Source: Amoebophrya sp. A120 (Eukaryota > Protista > Dinoflagellata). Taken from it: a DNA stretch of 64,000 nt. The notes beneath the pieces were generated by a model. The model worked only from the letters and a program-made list of their open reading frames with translations, ran no database searches and was not told the DNA's origin. Location: contig CAJINV010000001.1 in assembly GCA_905178155.1 (NCBI GenBank), forward strand, positions 7,013,794 through 7,077,793. The letters run 5' to 3'. Every line of letters starts with the position of its first letter. Within the stretch, counting starts at the first letter, position 1. The position numbers and the translations under genes were made by a program. This document shows, one piece after another, positions 4,216 to 40,635 of the stretch.

Positions 4216-5192
4216 CCTCGGACGTGCTGGCGCCTCTGAAACTACTTTTTTTTATTCACAGCGCCGGCTTCTTTCATAAGTAGTTCCTGTTGCGGTTGCC
4301 GATGCACCGGCCCATTCTCATTTTCTCATTCTCGTGTTCCTATCTCCGGCGACTACCTCACCACCGGCCGCATCTGGAACTAGGATTCGGAAAGTGATTA
4401 CTCAGACGTTTCTCGCGCATGAAAAATCTAGATCGCAGACCCACAAACGTCGACCAAGTACGATGACAAAAAACGAAAGCGAAATCGCACTCTACAACTC
4501 TCCTTGCTCTGCTGCTGGTATTCACACTCTTCTCCCACTTGCTGCAGCCTCACTTGTCACCTCAATAGTACTCGCGGTCCTCTCGCACTCAGTGCAATTC
4601 GATCCTGTTCACTCAGAGTGCTCTTCATTTCGAGGCCAGGTGGAACAGAAAGCGGCATATCACAACTTCTGAACAGGAAGTAAACCGAAGCCGGCATGTA
4701 CAAATTTTTTATGTTTCTCTAGCAGCACAAGAAATAGCGAAGTACTCAAGGAAATGATGTCGAGATTACTCAGTTGCACTAACGCTATGCAGCAGAAATA
4801 AAATTCCGAAAGCCCTATGTGAATATGTAGAGCAAAGTCCTCTTTCCTCAATTGATTCTACAAGTAGAGAAACGTTGGGTAAACGCTTTTTTAGAAGAAA
4901 ATCATGACACAACTACATCGAGAAGTTTGAATGCATGGAGAGCCAACACACAATACGTATAGAAGCCGGTGGGTGACCGATAGAAAAGTACGGATATATA
5001 GCAGTGTGCAAAAAAGCTCGAACAAATGATAGATACAAAATGATAAAACAAACTAAAAAGAAAAACATCAAAGCTGCAAGAAATAAGACATAAAATTCTT
5101 GCAACAAACACACACGTTCAAGCATCGAGACTAATTCATAGTACAACTCGAAGCGATGATCAAAAAACTCCTGCTTCTCCCCAATTCTGATT

Positions 5193-7010
5193 TTACCGAC
5201 CGTCCGAGGAAAACCCGTCGGACGACGAGGAGTCCCGTCGGAACCGGCTGCCCGCTCGGCGCGAACTCGAGCTTGCCTCGGTGGTCCGCCCGGTTTCCCG
5301 CCGGCCCTTCGGCAGCCCCGCCGGAAACAAGGTTTTCTCCTGGGCCCCGATCACAGCGTTCGCCGAATGTTCGCGCGACACCTGGCGCGACGCCTGCCGC
5401 GACTGCACCTCAACGACCTGGCGCTGCAGCTCTTCGGTCACTTGCCGGTCAATGGTGCTGATTTCACCGAGGGGGAAGCCTGCCATGTGCGATTCCACGT
5501 CGCGCAGCGCGACTTTCGCACTGACCCTCTTTGTCACTTGGTCCTCGTCGATTTCCTCCCGCAGGTGGCGCGGCATCTGGTCCAGTCGCTCCCCCGCGCG
5601 CACGCTGGTCGCGTTCCCGAGCAGGAAGCGGATCAGCACCCCGACCGCCATCACGCCAATCCCCACGCCCTGCCACCACGCGAACGACTCGCGCAGCATC
5701 AGCACCGCCCCGACGGCGGTCACGGACCGGTTGACGTTGCCGAAGATGGCCGCGGCAAAGGCACCGCACCGCTCCGTGAGGCGAAACTCGGACAGCACCC
5801 ACATGGTGGCCAGTAACCCTTCACCGAAGATCACCGCCATCGACAACTCGAACAGGCGCAGTGCCCCGCCCGTCGCGAAAATTTCGCCCACGCGGACGGC
5901 CGGCGTCCAAGACCGGTCGCCGTTCCAGTTGCGCTCCACGGACAGGGACATGACCAGGTACGCCACCGCGGACACCGGACCCATGATGCGCAGGATGTTC
6001 ACGACGTTCGGCATAGGCTGCGCGCCCGCCTCTCGTTCGCCCTCGCGCGCTGGCACCACCAGCGGGCGGTTCTCCTCTTGTTCTTGGTCAACCTCTAGGT
6101 CCGCCAAGCGTCCGAACGCGGGAACCGGCAGCTGCTGCTCATTTTGCGCCCCGCCTCGCTGCGCGTTGAGAACGGCCGCGCGCTCGTCTTCGGTTTCTTC
6201 CTGCGGGTTGGGCAGGTGCTCGATCCTCGGCGCGAGCTCGTTCTGCTCCTCTTCGATCATGCGCTCCTCGAACTGCCCGGACACCATGTCCACCACGATC
6301 ACGCGGACCACACGGAAAATCGTGGCTGTGATCGCCCAGAACAAGCCCAGGCCGAAGTTTTCGCGGCCTCCGGTGGACTGCACGTCCTCGCGGAAATTGG
6401 CCGGGAGCGCGGACAAAATCCCGCCCGCGACGATCGGAATGATGGAGAAGTAGGCCCAGTTGTTGTAGCGGATCGAGGGCTGCAGCACGCGCGTGAAGAT
6501 CACGGACAGCGCGGGCGCCGTCATCAGGATCGATTCCATGATACTCGCCGGCAGGTACATCAAAGCGTACAATTCTGCGAACGCATTGATCACGTTGAAG
6601 AAGACAAAGAGCCCCATCAGCCCGATCGGCACCCCGAAGTACCGCCACTGCGTGGTGACCAGCTGCTTTTCGTACGGCTTCGTCGGGCTCACGCAGAGGA
6701 AGAGGGACACCACGCAAAAACTGGTACTCGCGATGAATACGGAGAGAAACAGGGGCGCGTCAAAATGGAACCGCAGGCCCTTGAGCCACTCCGTGCCTTC
6801 CTTCGCATCCTCGGGGCGAGACACGATTAGCTTGAAAATAATCACCTGGAAAACGTACGCCGTTGCTTGCGTGACCACCTCGAGCACGTCGATCAGCATC
6901 CGCGTGGTACGCGCGGGCGCTGCTGCATTGGAGGTCGCGTCGGGTTGGCGACCGGATCCGGGGGACGCGTCGATGTTCCGGGACGAAGATGTAGCGGCAG
7001 ATGTCACCAT
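5193..7010 (-). CDS. DMT superfamily (TPT/EamA-like, SLC35-type) transporter
   Basis: Intronless ORF with about 10 hydrophobic segments in two halves; ALMYLPASIMESIL..APALSV, GAFAAAIFGNVNRSVTAVGAVLMLRESFAWWQGVG typical of TPT/EamA repeats. Confidence 0.75.
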   Translation of the reverse strand: MVTSAATSSSRNIDASPGSGRQPDATSNAAAPARTTRMLIDVLEVVTQATAYVFQVIIFKLIVSRPEDAKEGTEWLKGLRFHFDAPLFLSVFIASTSFCVVSLFLCVSPTKPYEKQLVTTQWRYFGVPIGLMGLFVFFNVINAFAELYALMYLPASIMESILMTAPALSVIFTRVLQPSIRYNNWAYFSIIPIVAGGILSALPANFREDVQSTGGRENFGLGLFWAITATIFRVVRVIVVDMVSGQFEERMIEEEQNELAPRIEHLPNPQEETEDERAAVLNAQRGGAQNEQQLPVPAFGRLADLEVDQEQEENRPLVVPAREGEREAGAQPMPNVVNILRIMGPVSAVAYLVMSLSVERNWNGDRSWTPAVRVGEIFATGGALRLFELSMAVIFGEGLLATMWVLSEFRLTERCGAFAAAIFGNVNRSVTAVGAVLMLRESFAWWQGVGIGVMAVGVLIRFLLGNATSVRAGERLDQMPRHLREEIDEDQVTKRVSAKVALRDVESHMAGFPLGEISTIDRQVTEELQRQVVEVQSRQASRQVSREHSANAVIGAQEKTLFPAGLPKGRRETGRTTEASSSSRRAGSRFRRDSSSSDGFSSDGR

Positions 7011-34649: not shown

Positions 34650-35315
34650 ATGTCGATGTCCAATTCCAAAAAGGCGGGTTTCCTGAAAAACCTCCTTATC
34701 GTCCACGGTGACAGCATCAAACGCCTCACACTTGACGCCATTGAGCCGTCCGTACTCCACGACCAGCTCCGCGTTTGCGTTTCAGAAGAAAGAGATCTCT
34801 CCTTTCTCACTGCGGACTACATTCATGACCTGCCCATTCTTGGCTGTTGCGTTCTCGTTAGCCGTCTTGAAGAACCGGTTCGCGTCAACATGACGGAATT
34901 CGTGTCCGGTCTGGCCTGGTTTTTCACCGCCGGTCAGGTCAATAACGTGCGCGACTGGATTTCGCACTTCGCGGTTCGCGTCTGGACCAAAGCAGTAGAT
35001 CCACTGGACGGCCGGGAGGTGTGGCTGGATTTTCGCATCGAAAGGACGACGGACGAAGTCATCGTAGCCAAGGTGGGGAGCTTCCACAAGCATAATGACG
35101 AAGAGGTCGGTCGGTGGTGGCACTGCGGGCACGGTGACTTCCCGCAGGGAAAAACCATCGGGCAGATGGTAGACTACGCGAGGGACCAGTCACGCTTGCC
35201 GTACAGCTTCGTTGCAAAGAACTGCAAGCACTTCGTCTACGATTTTTTTCGCGACGTATTGGGGGAGCGCCGCGACTTTGAGGGATTCTGCCAGGAAATC
35301 GAGCGCGCGTTGTAA
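34650..35315 (+). CDS. Permuted papain-like (PPPDE/LRAT-type NlpC/P60) peptidase, possible deubiquitinase/desumoylase
   Basis: His precedes Cys: SHFAVRV ... YSFVAKNCKHFV matches the Y.....NC.HF signature. Confidence 0.65.
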   Translation: MSMSNSKKAGFLKNLLIVHGDSIKRLTLDAIEPSVLHDQLRVCVSEERDLSFLTADYIHDLPILGCCVLVSRLEEPVRVNMTEFVSGLAWFFTAGQVNNVRDWISHFAVRVWTKAVDPLDGREVWLDFRIERTTDEVIVAKVGSFHKHNDEEVGRWWHCGHGDFPQGKTIGQMVDYARDQSRLPYSFVAKNCKHFVYDFFRDVLGERRDFEGFCQEIERAL

Positions 35316-36063
35316 AATTTTATGTTCTTTGCTAGTATTTCGCATATAGTTATAGGCTCAGCTACGGGTACCAGAAAATCAACCGCTCGCATACATCGTG
35401 GTCTGGCATCTGCTGTTGAGCCACAAATGACCGAGCCTCATTCGAATCACATTCCCAGCACTCATCATTCATTTTTATCGATCAATGCTAATCTGGGTCT
35501 GGTTGGTACTCAGCTTGTTTTTGTCCGTGAAAGTCGCCGCTGCTGTGTACGATGAGTTTGATCTCCCCGCGGCTGGGACAAGCTGTCTTCCGGGCGAATT
35601 TTCTGCACCAGGATGATGAAAGTCAACTTTTTCCGATCAATGCAATGAATCAAGTACTATCTGTCGCATGCCTAAGATGACCGACGTGGTGCAACAAGAA
35701 ACAGCACGTGATAGCAAATAAAAGAGACTTTTGTGAGGTTCTATCAGTTTTGATTTTGTTTTTATGTTTTTTTCGCTCCCTTCTAAAGATTGATCACGGC
35801 AATTTGAGGGACAAAGATGCAAGTTAGTATAGCTGATGAAATCTTTCTAGCTTTTGGTGGTGATCATGAACGTCGCCGTCTTTTGAATCCTTTTCATGAA
35901 GAAAAATATGCCACAAGATGCAGGCCGAGTGACACCGCAATTTTTTTTTTTCAGAAATATGTCTTTTTTTTGGTCTAACAAAACTTTTTTACGTTTTTAC
36001 GTTCTTTTCTAGGAAGAAAGTCATCAAGCCGCTATAGCTTGTTCTTCAACTCGAAAAGCAAGA

Positions 36064-39000
36064 ATGCAGGACCTAACGAAAGCCCGCGGGCGCTTGCAGA
36101 AAGAGCGGGCTGCGCTGCTGGAGCTGACTCTCGAGGAGCACGGGCTGTGTACCACCCTGGAAGACTGTCCGATCGATGGCACGTTTCCGGCCAAGTGGCG
36201 CGCGTACGTGCAGGGCCCACTGAGTACGTGCTGGGAAGCAGGCGTGTTTGCCGTCGAAATGGAAATCTGCGCGGAGTTTCCGACCAAGCCGTCCAAGGTG
36301 CGGTTCACCGACCCGGTTTTCCACCCGAATGTGGGCCCCGGCGGCGAAATTTGCGACAAGCTGTTCCAGGAGATGTGGTCCCCCGTGATCCGGTTGGAAA
36401 AAGTTCTGCTCACGGTCCGCAGCTTGCTCGTGGACGAGGTGAGGCAGAGTCCGGGTCTGGAGGCCACCGACGAGGCCACGCGGGCTTCCGGTACGATGAT
36501 CAAGACGAAAATATTAACGGGCACTAGTAGCTCCTCCTCTGCGCTAGCTTCTTCGTCCGGCAGCGGTCAGCATAACAAGGTCTACAGTGCACCGCGCACG
36601 GCATACCAGCTGCAGAACCACGAGAGCTTTGTTGCTGCCGACGGCAGAACCCTACCGCGCAAGCTGTATCACTACACCAGTGGGAAGAATCGGGACCGGA
36701 TTCAGCAGTCCGGAGTTTTGATGGGCAGTTCCAAGGGCGGCTATGGTCCGGGCGTTTACGCGACAGCAATCCACCCCATGCGAACCACGGAAAAGACCGA
36801 TATCCTGGCGAACAATTACGGTATATAGGAGTAGCTATGTAGCTCTAGCTGGGTTTGACGAGTTCCGTAACTGCTTCGAAAGGAATGGTAGGTCTCCACC
36901 ACTGCAGCTCCATTTTGCGAGGCAGTGCAGCTCTTGAGCATTTTTATCTATCATCAACTGCGAAGAACAATTTGTTGGGTTGATTTGAAGAGCATTAGGA
37001 ATGGTGCCGGAAGGTTATGACTGCTCACAAACAACTCCTGTCAGGTTTCATCTGTTCCGGTGACGGACGCGCAGACTTCGTGATTGAATTGGACGTGCAG
37101 TGTTTACTGGCTGACAAGTATAATGTGCAGCACCACCAAAAGGGCACACGCGACATTTACTTGCTGACGCTGCCGCACAAGAGCCAGCACGACATCACTT
37201 TGACCCCCCAGAACCACCATCTGGTGCCTTTCCACGCCCTGGCGAGCTGCGAAGTGAACCACCCGGCCAGTGAATTGATCCGAAGCGACAACGCTCTGTA
37301 TCGGGCCTGCGTCCAGTGGAGTATCGTGAACCACGGCACCTACCTAGAGGACTTGCCACGGCAGGGTGGCGTACCACTTCCCAAACCGTCGGTGATGCGG
37401 AAATACTTTGAGAAGCCGTTGCCGAGTACGAATAAAAGCGGAGTGGAAGTAGAAAATACTCCAACTCCAGCGCGCGCGCAACCATCGCGCGAGCAACTGA
37501 AGGCCGTCGGAGAAGCGATGTTTTCCGCGCGGAGCCTGGTGCCGTCCTTTTTTGACCTGTATTCCTTTCCGCAGTTCCGAAAGAAGCTGGGCGAGAGAGA
37601 GGGTCAGGTCGCGGAGGCGATACTGCGGAAACACTTGGGCAAAGCGCGTCGACTAGATACGCTGGAGTTTTCCGTCGAAAATTTTGTGACGAAAAAACGC
37701 AGCAAGCTGCGTTTCAGGAATCTGGACGAACTGGAGAACCACGGCGCAAAATATTTCGTGGAAGACGAAGCGAATTATGCCAGTTCCGGCGCGCAAGACG
37801 AACTGCAGTGGAGGACTTTGAAGGTCGAACTCAACGAGAAGCTGGAGAAACTCATAGTCGACAAGCTATCGGTGGGCGTAGGCATTGGACCGGAGGAGAT
37901 CGCGCGTACGGCTACCGCGGTGTCGGTCCGAGCGGGTGTGCAACCCGAGGGGGCACTGTCCTGGAATACGGCTCTGTGTTCGTGCACGGGGTATGAAAAT
38001 TTCAACACGCTGCAAGTCGAATTTAGCTTCAACGCAGGGCAAGATGCGGACGGGCGCGCGTACGCCCGGCGGGAAGAAACGTGCTATCTGCCGCGGAACC
38101 CGATGGGGCTGTGTCTGTTGCACCTTTTCCAGGTGGCGTTCAAGAAAGGCGTCATGTCCAAGCTCGGCCATCGCGAATCGAACAAGCAGTACTCGCCTTG
38201 TTTCCATGTTCGCATCAAAACGTGGAACCAACCAGGTGCCTACGGGTGGCCAGACCCGAGCTACTGGACGACCACGATCAAAAAGCTGGCGGGCGAGGGA
38301 ATCACGTTTGCGGACGTGGATTTTTCAGTGCAGCAGAAGGCGTTTGTTGAGTTCTTCAAGGCCATCCCGCCGGGGCCCGGCGAATCAGCCTGCTGGGCGC
38401 TACTGCAGGACCAGAACCACAGGACGGGTAATCACGTGACCGCGTCGGGTGCACGTCGCTCGTCCCATGGGCCGACGTATGCTTCCTCTTATGTCTTTCC
38501 CCATGTCCGTGGGTTCTCGGCCTATCAACCTCCGTTCCAGGCGCCGTCGAATCGCAGTCACCAAAATAGTTCTGATCCGCTGGCGCCATCGGCGGCCGGA
38601 GTTGTTGCCGGGACGGGGAATTGGACGTTAGGAGCGCGGGCGCTTGCGGCAACGGGGCTTGCTAATTTAGCGGTGGCACCATCCGCCGGAGCAGCTGCGC
38701 CTTCTTCGTCTTCCCTGGCGGCGACAGCCAGCAGCAGTGCAGCGGTGGCATCATTCGCCGGAGCAAAAGCGCCTTCTTCGTCTTTCCTGGCGGCGACACC
38801 AGCCAGCAGCAGTGCAGCTGTACTTGTACTTCCCACCACAGTCGCCGCGATGTGGTGGGAAGGCCACTACCGCCGCGATGATTGCTTCCCGGGCGTCGAA
38901 ATCCACCAGAACTTTGAGAAGCATGGGTATATCCCCGCAAGCGATTTGCTGCAGCGAGACAGTACGGGTCACGTGGACGTCCAGCTTCTTGGGCACGAAG

Positions 39001-39647
39001 TTCCGAATCCGCTCCCCAATGCGTGTTCAGTGTGCCTGGACGAGGAAGACCCCGATCCGACGGCACGAAGCGGGGTGTGCCTGAGCAACTACTGCTCGCA
39101 CACGTTTCACAAGTCTTGCCTCTCGGGCTGGTTCAAAAACGGCAAAAAGGAATGTCCGCAGTGCCGCGCGCAGCTGTGTACGCTGAATATCGGGAAGATG
39201 CCTGACGGAAATATGTCGTGGTCTTCCATCCTTGGTACGCTGGCCGGGACCGAACCCACCACACACATGCTGCAAGTCACTTTCGACTTCCCGGCTGGGT
39301 TCTCAGTGGAGGAGCAGAAGGCGTACCATGGGCGAAGCGAGAACGCCTTTCTGCCTATTAACAAGGAGGGCACCACCTTGCTGGAACTTTTCAAAATTGC
39401 GTTCAAACGCCGACTGATGTTTGGACTGGGCGACCGGCTCACGGGGGGGCGGTTTGGACCCACCTTCAACATTCATTTGAAAACGACCGTGAAGCAGGTC
39501 GGAGCGCACGGCCACGGCTACCCGGATCCGGGGTACTTCCAGCGCACGATCGAGGAGCTCAAGACCAACGGCATCGAAATTAAGGATATCCAGGTACAGA
39601 ACCATTCCGGTGCGTCCCCGAAGTTGAAGAAGCAAAAAACAACCTGA
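36064..39647 (+). CDS. Multidomain UBC(E2) - HYD-type ADP-ribosyltransferase - Deltex-C - RING-H2 - Deltex-C protein (~1119 aa)
   Basis: Exons 36064-36820 and 37045-39647 are joined in frame by a phase-1 GT-AG intron. UBC: FPTKPSKVRF..VFHPNV...GEIC...WSP. ART: LYHYTS, GYGPGVY, NNYG, VIELD, RDIY. DTC1: QPEG..YLP..AF..KT..GWPDPSY..GI. RING: CSVC...CSHTFHKSC..W...CPQC. DTC2: MPDG.M..AFLP..AF.RRLMF..IHLKT..GYPDPGY..EEL..GI. Confidence 0.85.
38697..38820 (+). repeat. Coding direct duplication in the Ala/Ser linker
   Basis: GCGCCTTCTTCGTCTTYCCTGGCGGCGACA..GCCAGCAGCAGTGCAGC occurs twice (APSSSxLAATxASSSAAV). Confidence 0.8.
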
Positions 39648-40635
39648 AGATGAATGAAGTGGGCATCACTGTTGATAACTGCTCGGCTGGGTGCGTTTAC
39701 CCGGCCAACGAAGGGAAGTTTGGCACCTCGAAGAAGACGACCGGGTGCAGTTCGACGTGGACAATGAAGGTTTTTGTGAGAACACAGGGCGAGAAATGAA
39801 ATATGCCCGCGGGATCGCTTTCTACAAATGCCAGGAAAATACCTGGCAAGCGGAGTGACTGTCGGGTCATTCCGGATAAAGCAGTACTGGGTGCCCGTCC
39901 ACTCATAAGTTAAATGAGACGACGAAGAAACAAAGGACACGCACAAGCATGATGATGATGTATGATGATGATGGCGATCAATTATATTCCACATTGCAAC
40001 AGACTGAGTTGAAAACTCTTTATTATACCGACGCAAGTAAGCTATTGGAGCTTTTTTTTTTGGCAGAGACATATGCAGCGGTAAAGAAGCCGCGCAAACG
40101 CAATCCCATTCGCTCGAAAGAAAATTGCAACAAGAGAGGTATTAGTCGCTCCACAAGCAGGAAACAGTACGTCCAACTAAGGCACAATCCTTGATCATGT
40201 GTTCGTTCGGTTCGGCGTAGTGAGTGAGAGAGATTTGCTCAATCGGCGCAAAGAAAAGCCCTGAGTTAGTTTTAGTGTCGTGCCAGGTGTTTGCTTCTTC
40301 GTGTGGTTGTTTTCTTTTTGATACCACAGGATTTTTCGCTGTCGATCTTCATTTGAAAATCTTTTCGTGACCTCGCAAAGCAGATAACGAAACGGCTTTG
40401 TTGTCGATGTACAGCTGGATGATTTTCTTGATCTGTTACTGTGGTTGTGGCCTTGCTTATTATACAGTGTCCGGTAAATAAAACTGAAATCTGAAAAAGA
40501 ACTAGCACAAACGAAACTCTGTGCCGCGCACGTGGTGTAGAACAAAGGGAGACGTACGGAACTCCAGAAAATGTTCCATGGAAGCGTGGCTAATATGCGT
40601 AGCTGAAAGTAGGCCAAAGCGCAGAAAGAAACAAG

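Follow-up and report, generated by a model that had tools for sequence, protein, structure and literature searches.

Amoebophrya sp. A120 is a marine syndinian that parasitises dinoflagellates. We analysed a 64,000-nucleotide stretch of its genome (Dinoflagellata; assembly GCA_905178155.1, contig CAJINV010000001.1, positions 7,013,794 to 7,077,793 of the forward strand), referred to below as the window, and describe here a gene at window positions 36064–39647 on the + strand. Its product, deposited as a 1119-residue 'unnamed protein product' and labelled P0001 here, brings together in one polypeptide a ubiquitin-conjugating (E2, UBC) core, an ADP-ribosyltransferase (ART) domain resembling that of HYD1 toxins, a RING-H2 domain and two Deltex C-terminal (DTC) domains. 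We regard it as evenly poised whether this single, spliced and transcribed gene encodes an enzyme with the predicted activity of coupling ADP-ribosylation to ubiquitylation in one chain; judged from its sequence, a self-contained ADP-ribose–ubiquitin writer is plausible.

Gene structure and domain layout

The locus holds two open reading frames (ORFs) in different frames, at 36064–36828 and 37017–39647, and in a protein search the 876-residue ORF proved 100% identical to the deposited P0001. Whole-protein analyses were run on the deposited sequence, with which each exon was compared separately. The translations of exon 1 codons 1–252 (36064–36819) and exon 2 codons 254–1119 (37047–39644) match it exactly, a codon split into G and GT encodes Gly253, and the stop codon TGA lies at 39645–39647. 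Among the assembled contigs of run X1, one of 3476 nt joins 36362–36819 to 37044–40061, skipping 224 nt with the ends GT..AG, and a second spans 36035–36383, with contig depth at zero beyond 36035–40061 on both sides. A splice skip combined with such sharp limits is the footprint of a spliced mRNA and not of genomic DNA. A first-pass annotation, made from the sequence alone, had proposed a GT–AG intron at 36821–37044 and a continuous frame across it, and both are borne out by the exon translations and the X1 contig. The features of the gene are as follows.

36035–40061, + strand: transcribed span in the run X1 assembled contigs, with a 5′ untranslated region of ~29 nt and a 3′ untranslated region of ~414 nt
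36064–36820, + strand: coding exon 1, residues 1–252 and the first base of Gly253, with a translation equal to P0001
36064–36456, + strand: UBC (E2) core, residues 1–131, with helix 1, the β-sheet, HPN at 87–89, Cys97 (36352–36354), WSP and helix 2, from UQ_con and the AlphaFold model
36457–36621, + strand: Ser-rich disordered linker, residues 132–186, with a predicted local distance difference test score (pLDDT) of 28–34, occupying the position of the 'PNPDDP' loop of canonical E2s
36622–36820, + strand: N-terminal part of the ART, residues 187–253, with LYHYT containing His203 (36670–36672), GPGVY containing Tyr232 (36757–36759) and NNYG
36821–37044, + strand: intron of 224 nt, GT..AG, containing an in-frame stop at 36826–36828 and skipped in the X1 contig
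37045–39647, + strand: coding exon 2, the last two bases of Gly253, residues 254–1119 and the stop TGA
37045–37238, + strand: C-terminal part of the ART, residues 253–317, with FVIELD containing Glu267 and Asp269 (37092–37094), of which VIELD is conserved
37239–37337, + strand: post-ART helices, residues 318–350 (starting SCEVN), proposed E2 helices 3 and 4 from a homologue model and a sequence test
37338–37934, + strand: middle region, residues 351–549, with no Pfam match and pLDDT mostly <50; helices and one β-hairpin at low confidence
37935–38303, + strand: DTC1, without a RING, residues 550–672, 58.4 bits in a genome scan, DTX3L-like
38355–38810, + strand: Ala/Ser-rich low-complexity region, residues 690–841, pLDDT 25–31, separating DTC1 from the RING
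39021–39167, + strand: RING-H2, residues 912–960, zf-RING_2 E 2e-8, with Cys913 as first ligand and Arg after the last Cys (linchpin position)
39192–39575, + strand: DTC2, residues 969–1096, 84.6 bits, with His1063 (39474–39476), GHGYPDP (His1076) and Glu1090 (39555–39557)

The domain positions of the first-pass annotation were in general right to within a few codons: it had set a Deltex domain at ~37940–38305, a RING-H2 at ~39024–39167 and a second Deltex domain at ~39198–39575, close to DTC1, the zf-RING_2 match and DTC2, respectively.

An E2 core, an ART and two Deltex modules

The E2 assignment is clear from profile, alignment and model alike, confirming the UBC domain with HPN and a catalytic Cys that had been read from the DNA. 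Pfam UQ_con (PF00179) matches residues 42–130 of P0001 with E 2.6e-23 (82.6 bits against a cut-off of 27), the match spanning only profile positions 27–116 of 140. With 30–33% identity to UbcH5/Ubc4-type E2s, the core keeps HPN, Cys97 and WSP, and its His87-Pro-Asn and Cys97 align with their Ubc4/UbcH5 counterparts at canonical spacing. The model of the core has pLDDT >90, and E2 structures match it at a Z-score of ~14. Across the UBC-ART family described below, HPN is invariant and at least 90% of 13 members retain the E2 Cys, every Amoebophrya copy among them. At the position of E2 Asp117, which lies at the proposed ART insertion site, P0001 has Ser and most relatives have Ala. Because Asp117 is required for lysine ubiquitylation and dispensable for ADP-ribose ubiquitylation, these replacements fit the latter activity.

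For the ART, Pfam Tox-ART-HYD1 (PF15633) matches residues 201–283 at 23.4 bits (E 9e-5), below the curated cut-off of 25 bits, and we therefore call the domain HYD1-like and not a member of that family. It is nonetheless the sole ART family matched in P0001 and in eight of the nine scanned UBC-ART relatives (17.6–24 bits), in each case from profile position 1 onwards, while the PARP catalytic domain (PF00644) gave no match to P0001 up to E 10 in Pfam and NCBIfam returned no match for the ART. In a protein-language-model comparison, residues 165–345 lie closest to two HYD1 clusters (0.92), with the PARP catalytic domain and exotoxin A as more distant neighbours. AlphaFold2 models residues 187–322 at pLDDT ~90, and in an all-against-all structural search the ART model (residues ~189–321) matches mouse tRNA 2′-phosphotransferase (Tpt1) at Z 9.2 over 107 residues (root-mean-square deviation (rmsd) 3.5) and Agrobacterium protein 6b at Z 9.0. 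Both are ART folds, and apart from them the top 50 structural matches comprise only E2-type (UBC/UEV-like) and Deltex structures. Given the full 1119-residue model, Foldseek returned only Deltex and E2 structures, hiding the ART that VIA-align revealed. The ART in the model of a homologue, P0009, matches ART folds at Z 9.2, 8.0 and 7.5.

Conserved residues point in the same direction. PxKLYHYT, GxGVYxT, NNYG and FVIELD are conserved family-wide, with the His and Tyr invariant, and the order His, [Arg/Lys], [Phe/Tyr], [Asp/Glu] that is conserved in HYD1 domains (PMC3482391) is present in P0001 as His203, Arg209/Arg211, Tyr232 and Glu267/Asp269. In the HYD1 toxin Tre23, which targets 23S rRNA, mutation of the corresponding His and Tyr abolishes toxicity (PMC8661411). 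Nothing of a polymorphic-toxin context surrounds the domain in P0001: Pfam identifies no secretion or Rhs module, the gene is eukaryotic and intron-bearing, and the protein's N terminus is E2 helix 1. The H-Y-D type ART split by an intron that the first-pass annotation described is thus upheld by the motifs, the sub-threshold Pfam match and a confident model in which the HYT region matches ART folds at Z ~9.

In the C-terminal half, Pfam DTC (PF18102) matches twice (E 8e-39 for the whole protein). The RING–DTC2 unit aligns with DTX2 at E 5e-21 and with the DTX2 RING-DTC structure at Z 17.3, and DTC2 matches the DTX3L DTC structure at Z 18.2 (rmsd 1.6). Its His1063, GHGYPDP His1076 and Glu1090 align with DTX2 His582, His594 and Glu608, of which His582 and Glu608 form the pair that activates the ADP-ribose 3′ hydroxyl for attack on E2~ubiquitin (PMC7615817, PMC10810221). 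Both members of this catalytic pair are thus present in DTC2, whereas DTC1 fails on the Glu. In a residue-by-residue alignment DTC1 is most like DTX3L (E 3.8e-13), whose catalytic residues are His707 and Glu733; it keeps His640 and has Tyr652 in a DTX3L-type AYGWPDP, but Lys666 replaces the catalytic Glu (DTX3L Glu733). As it also has no RING in front of it, DTC1 looks like a putative non-catalytic ADP-ribose binder. Some 50 residues before the RING (862–910) are common to P0001 and the paralogue P0029 described below.

The layout is probably not one of beads on a string, since the ART seems to be nested in the E2. The E2 match in P0001 ends after helix 2 (UbcH5 residue ~118), with the Ser-rich disordered linker next. 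To end the UBC domain at 36430, as the first-pass annotation did, is to lose a part of the fold that probably resumes after the ART, at ~37239–37337. In the compact homologue P0009 (336 residues, UBC-ART only), modelled at pLDDT 83.7 and a predicted template modelling score of 0.68, whole E2 chains align over model residues 24–328 (150 of 159 residues, rmsd 1.9, Z 19.4), which puts the post-ART helices where helices 3 and 4 of an E2 lie.

A sequence test, in which the post-ART segment of each member was appended to its E2 core and compared with a hidden Markov model (HMM) built from ten ordinary E2s, agrees with this placement. With the segment in place, the match extends from position ~118 to 140–147, and the 11 members together gain +64 bits, where shuffled segments reach 20.5 ± 4.6 (maximum 33) and the pre-ART linker +22. 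This sum overstates independence, given that the members are related; the E2 HMM is also small. For P0001 by itself the gain is +6.0 bits, equalled by one in 200 shuffles. The family pattern SCxxNxxAxxL......YxxxV also parallels the E2 pattern NxxAAxx(Y/F)......YxxxV. Taken together, helix pattern, HMM and P0009 model suggest that the ART is most likely inserted in the PNPDDP loop beside the catalytic Cys, and that the post-ART helices are probably the last two helices of the E2. The basis of this placement is the homologue model and the sequence test, not the model of P0001 itself. A PDB profile search with the family alignment was uninformative on the question, MAFFT having placed the E2 C-terminal helices against the pre-ART linker, and two metagenome contig scans for ART-only sequence found just plain E2 genes without an ART.

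A small protist family and its genomic surroundings

A word-index search with the 876-residue ORF matched only P0001; the family emerged from an exhaustive HMMER search over 1.84 billion representatives, followed by Pfam and source look-ups, which places the gene in a small protist family of UBC-ART proteins. Its Amoebophrya A25 relative (P0003) has UBC, ART, RING and DTC domains and a weak UBA-like match, and Amoebophrya AT5.2 has a fragmentary member. The transcriptome of the diplonemid Lacrimia lanifica contains a protein (P0002/P0151) with UBC, ART, RING and DTC in the same order. Environmental relatives consist of UBC-ART only, or, in two members, of UBC-ART with ubiquitin-interaction motifs. 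A region-restricted search with the P0009 ART yielded only two further members, an indication that proteins of this family are rare in the databases at present. Full-text searches on ART-HYD1, on Deltex with ART fusions and on Amoebophrya with ubiquitin turned up no description of a UBC-ART-RING-DTC architecture, in agreement with the first-pass annotation, which knew of none; the fungal PARP–E2 proteins discussed below are a partial precedent.

The same parts recur at a second A120 locus, on contig 11, where a gene for a UBC-ART protein has a gene for a RING-DTC protein directly downstream in the same orientation.

G000:C11:197000-206900, − strand: paralogous locus L014, with many-exon UBC-ART P0006 (405 residues) and RING-DTC P0029 (881 residues) ~350 nt downstream

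Judged from sequence, this locus has the same layout as the P0001 gene. An assembly gap of N letters (L014 ~5190–5470) lies right after the exon ending SCEVNEEASALL, at the point expected to encode the E2 helices. This casts doubt on the annotated end of P0006, and P0006 and P0029 may be one gene. That these parts occur fused or side by side more than once independently supports their working together.

Three more HYD1-like ART genes are found in A120 without a UBC domain, L001 (G000:C14:1238399-1241620), L003 (C9) and L004 (C5). Their ARTs carry KILYHYT, GPGVY and VALD motifs and score 16–19 bits. L003 and L004 have Pro-rich N-terminal regions and are probably membrane-anchored, and L001 has a marginal match to an RNA 2′-phosphotransferase model (E 0.04).

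Just upstream of the P0001 gene, at 34650–35315 (+) in the window, lies an ORF of 221 residues with an NCKHF-type motif. Pfam LRAT reaches only 13.9 bits, there is no PDB sequence match, and the closest named Atlas cluster is Peptidase_C97 (PPPDE/DeSI; features 0.91, TM 0.57). It is a weak lead to a papain-like isopeptidase adjoining the E2-ART-Deltex gene; run X1 provides no cover over 35000–35315.

The suggestion that the P0001 gene encodes a parasite effector found no support. The protein has no signal peptide, its N terminus being E2 helix 1, and it has a homologue in the Lacrimia transcriptome, on which grounds we reject a classically secreted effector.

Proposed chemistry, alternatives and significance

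Residues for every step of a combined reaction are present in P0001: Cys97 with HPN; His203, Tyr232 and Asp269; and His1063 with Glu1090. From these we infer the catalytic steps, their order and the target as follows. E1 would load ubiquitin onto Cys97 of the built-in E2. The HYD1-like ART, in the E2 loop by Cys97, would use NAD+ to place a single ADP-ribose on a target, which may be protein or nucleic acid. DTC2 would bind the ADP-ribose on the target, with His1063 and Glu1090 activating the 3′ hydroxyl of the adenine-proximal ribose, and the adjacent RING would hold the E2~ubiquitin thioester, which could belong to its own chain or to another copy of the protein. Ubiquitin would then be esterified to the ADP-ribose, giving target–ADP-ribose–ubiquitin, while DTC1, lacking both the Glu and a RING, may act as a non-catalytic ADP-ribose binder that helps to hold ADP-ribosylated material. 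Such a protein would write, read and ubiquitylate ADP-ribose unaided and would need only E1, as the first-pass annotation had envisaged. Deltex ligases can ubiquitylate ADP-ribosylated nucleic acids (PMC10810221), and RNA is acted on both by the one HYD1 enzyme characterised to date and by Tpt1, the closest solved fold; a nucleic-acid target is therefore a live possibility.

A bolder extension, speculative and well short of an even chance in our judgement, is that the UBC-ART core forms a new catalytic unit in which the NAD+ site faces the thioester, allowing a concerted transfer of ubiquitin to ADP-ribose or NAD+, or modification of thioester-bound ubiquitin by the ART. RNA or DNA ends would be possible natural targets given the kinship with HYD1 and Tpt1, and the system could represent an ancient protist form of nucleic-acid tagging, for example against viruses or mobile elements.

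Several findings weigh against the coupled enzyme or parts of it. The ART stays below the Pfam curated cut-off in every UBC-ART member. UBC9 is among the best E2 matches, and the modifier carried may be a ubiquitin-like protein other than ubiquitin. Several relatives lack RING-DTC, and the conserved core reaction may therefore not need the DTC. In the Lacrimia protein, Ser replaces the E2 catalytic Cys and an insert of ~20 residues follows HPN, which would leave the E2 as a possible scaffold in that lineage at least. The nesting relies on the model of a homologue with 33% identity and on a modest sequence signal; in the model of P0001 itself the post-ART helices have low confidence and are undocked on the E2, the input alignment being poor there. 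Finally, run X1 consists of assembled contigs that were only guessed to derive from RNA, and three runs of raw RNA reads assigned to the same species had none on the locus and hence give no test.

Of the competing explanations, the one that fares best, though we think it unlikely, holds that the ART modifies ubiquitin itself or the E2~ubiquitin thioester, so that the UBC-ART core would make ADP-ribosyl-ubiquitin and the DTCs would bind the product. The position of the ART in a loop beside the E2 cysteine would suit such a reaction, as would the minimal members that are UBC-ART only, two bearing ubiquitin-interaction motifs, and ARTs that modify ubiquitin, SidE and CteC, are known. The ubiquitin-directed ARTs known so far, however, belong to a different ART clade, the R-S-E type, the one characterised HYD1 enzyme targets rRNA, and among solved folds the closest are ARTs that are directed at nucleic acids or are plant effectors.

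Slightly more doubtful still is a catalytically dead ART-like domain that only binds NAD+ or ADP-ribose, which would leave P0001 as an E2–E3 hybrid ubiquitylating lysines or the ADP-ribose marks of others. The Pfam scores under cut-off in all members are compatible with this, there are known E2–E3 hybrids, of which UBE2O and BIRC6 turn up in the structural matches, and PARP9 has been regarded similarly. The invariant His and Tyr and the conserved acidic VIELD in Amoebophrya, diplonemid and environmental sequences are nevertheless the pattern expected from selection on catalysis, and they count against a dead ART.

We consider it improbable that the E2 domain is a non-catalytic, UEV-like ubiquitin-binding scaffold, with ubiquitin delivered by a separate E2 that the RING recruits. 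The Lacrimia Ser and insertion are what such a scaffold would lead one to expect, and a direct reading of the sequence gives Thr in P0001 at the canonical Phe62 RING-contact position, but HPN and, in every Amoebophrya copy, the catalytic Cys are retained in the family as described above. Least credible of all, and rejected, is the wrong merging of two genes, one for an E2-ART protein that ends with the stop at 36826 and one for a Deltex protein: the in-frame stop does lie 6 nt inside the proposed intron, and the second ORF does begin with the ATG at 37017, but the X1 contig is spliced exactly at GT..AG past the stop at 36826–36828 and spans both parts, the ART domain with its conserved VIELD and SCxxN motifs runs in frame across the junction, and relatives without this intron carry the same continuous sequence.

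For a coupled writer of this kind, the closest known systems in function are human DTX3L–PARP9/PARP14, or DTX2 with PARP10, together with UbcH5 (PMC7615817, PMC10810221). They share with P0001 a RING-DTC with catalytic His and Glu and GHGYPDP, an ART that gives ADP-ribose and a UbcH5-like E2 that gives ubiquitin, and DTX3L shares with DTC1 the Tyr in the pocket. They differ in that P0001 has writer, E2 and E3 in one chain, an ART that is HYD1-like and not PARP, no macrodomain, WWE or KH, and an extra RING-less DTC without the Glu. The nearest architectural precedent is provided by the fungal clade 6A PARPs (fPARP2; PMC2964712, PMC13720257), which likewise carry, on a single chain, a domain of the ART superfamily and an E2 domain that has its catalytic Cys; the combination is thus not wholly unprecedented. 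In these proteins, however, a PARP-type ART precedes a separate C-terminal UBCc, with no RING-DTC and no nesting. Tox-ART-HYD1 toxins such as Photorhabdus Tre23 (PMC8661411; PMC3482391) have the same His-Tyr...Tyr...acidic order in a small ART, whereas P0001 scores below the cut-off and is eukaryotic and intracellular, without an Rhs or secretion module or an immunity gene, and with its ART apparently embedded in an E2. UBE2O and BIRC6 resemble P0001 in having a UBC within a large multidomain protein and are ligases that need only E1, as P0001 may, but have no ART, RING or DTC and an uninterrupted UBC fold. Legionella SidE combines NAD+/ADP-ribose chemistry with ubiquitin attachment in a single chain, as predicted for P0001. 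SidE bypasses E1 and E2, using a different ART type plus a phosphodiesterase, whereas P0001 has no further Pfam domain, and its E2 and RING-DTC imply the canonical thioester route.

The ADP-ribose–ubiquitin hybrid mark was defined recently and rests largely on in vitro experiments in which animal Deltex ligases were given an E2 and a PARP as separate proteins; its physiological role is still debated. P0001 may do in one chain the job for which animals use three separate proteins. Together with E1 alone it would make a compact system for biochemical and structural work, and it gives a hint of which kind of E2 is specialised for ADP-ribose ubiquitylation. An ART nested at the active site of an E2 is a new and directly testable idea. 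Furthermore, the fusion of the three activities across several protist lineages, together with the adjacent genes, argues that they act jointly in the cell and that their coupling is old.

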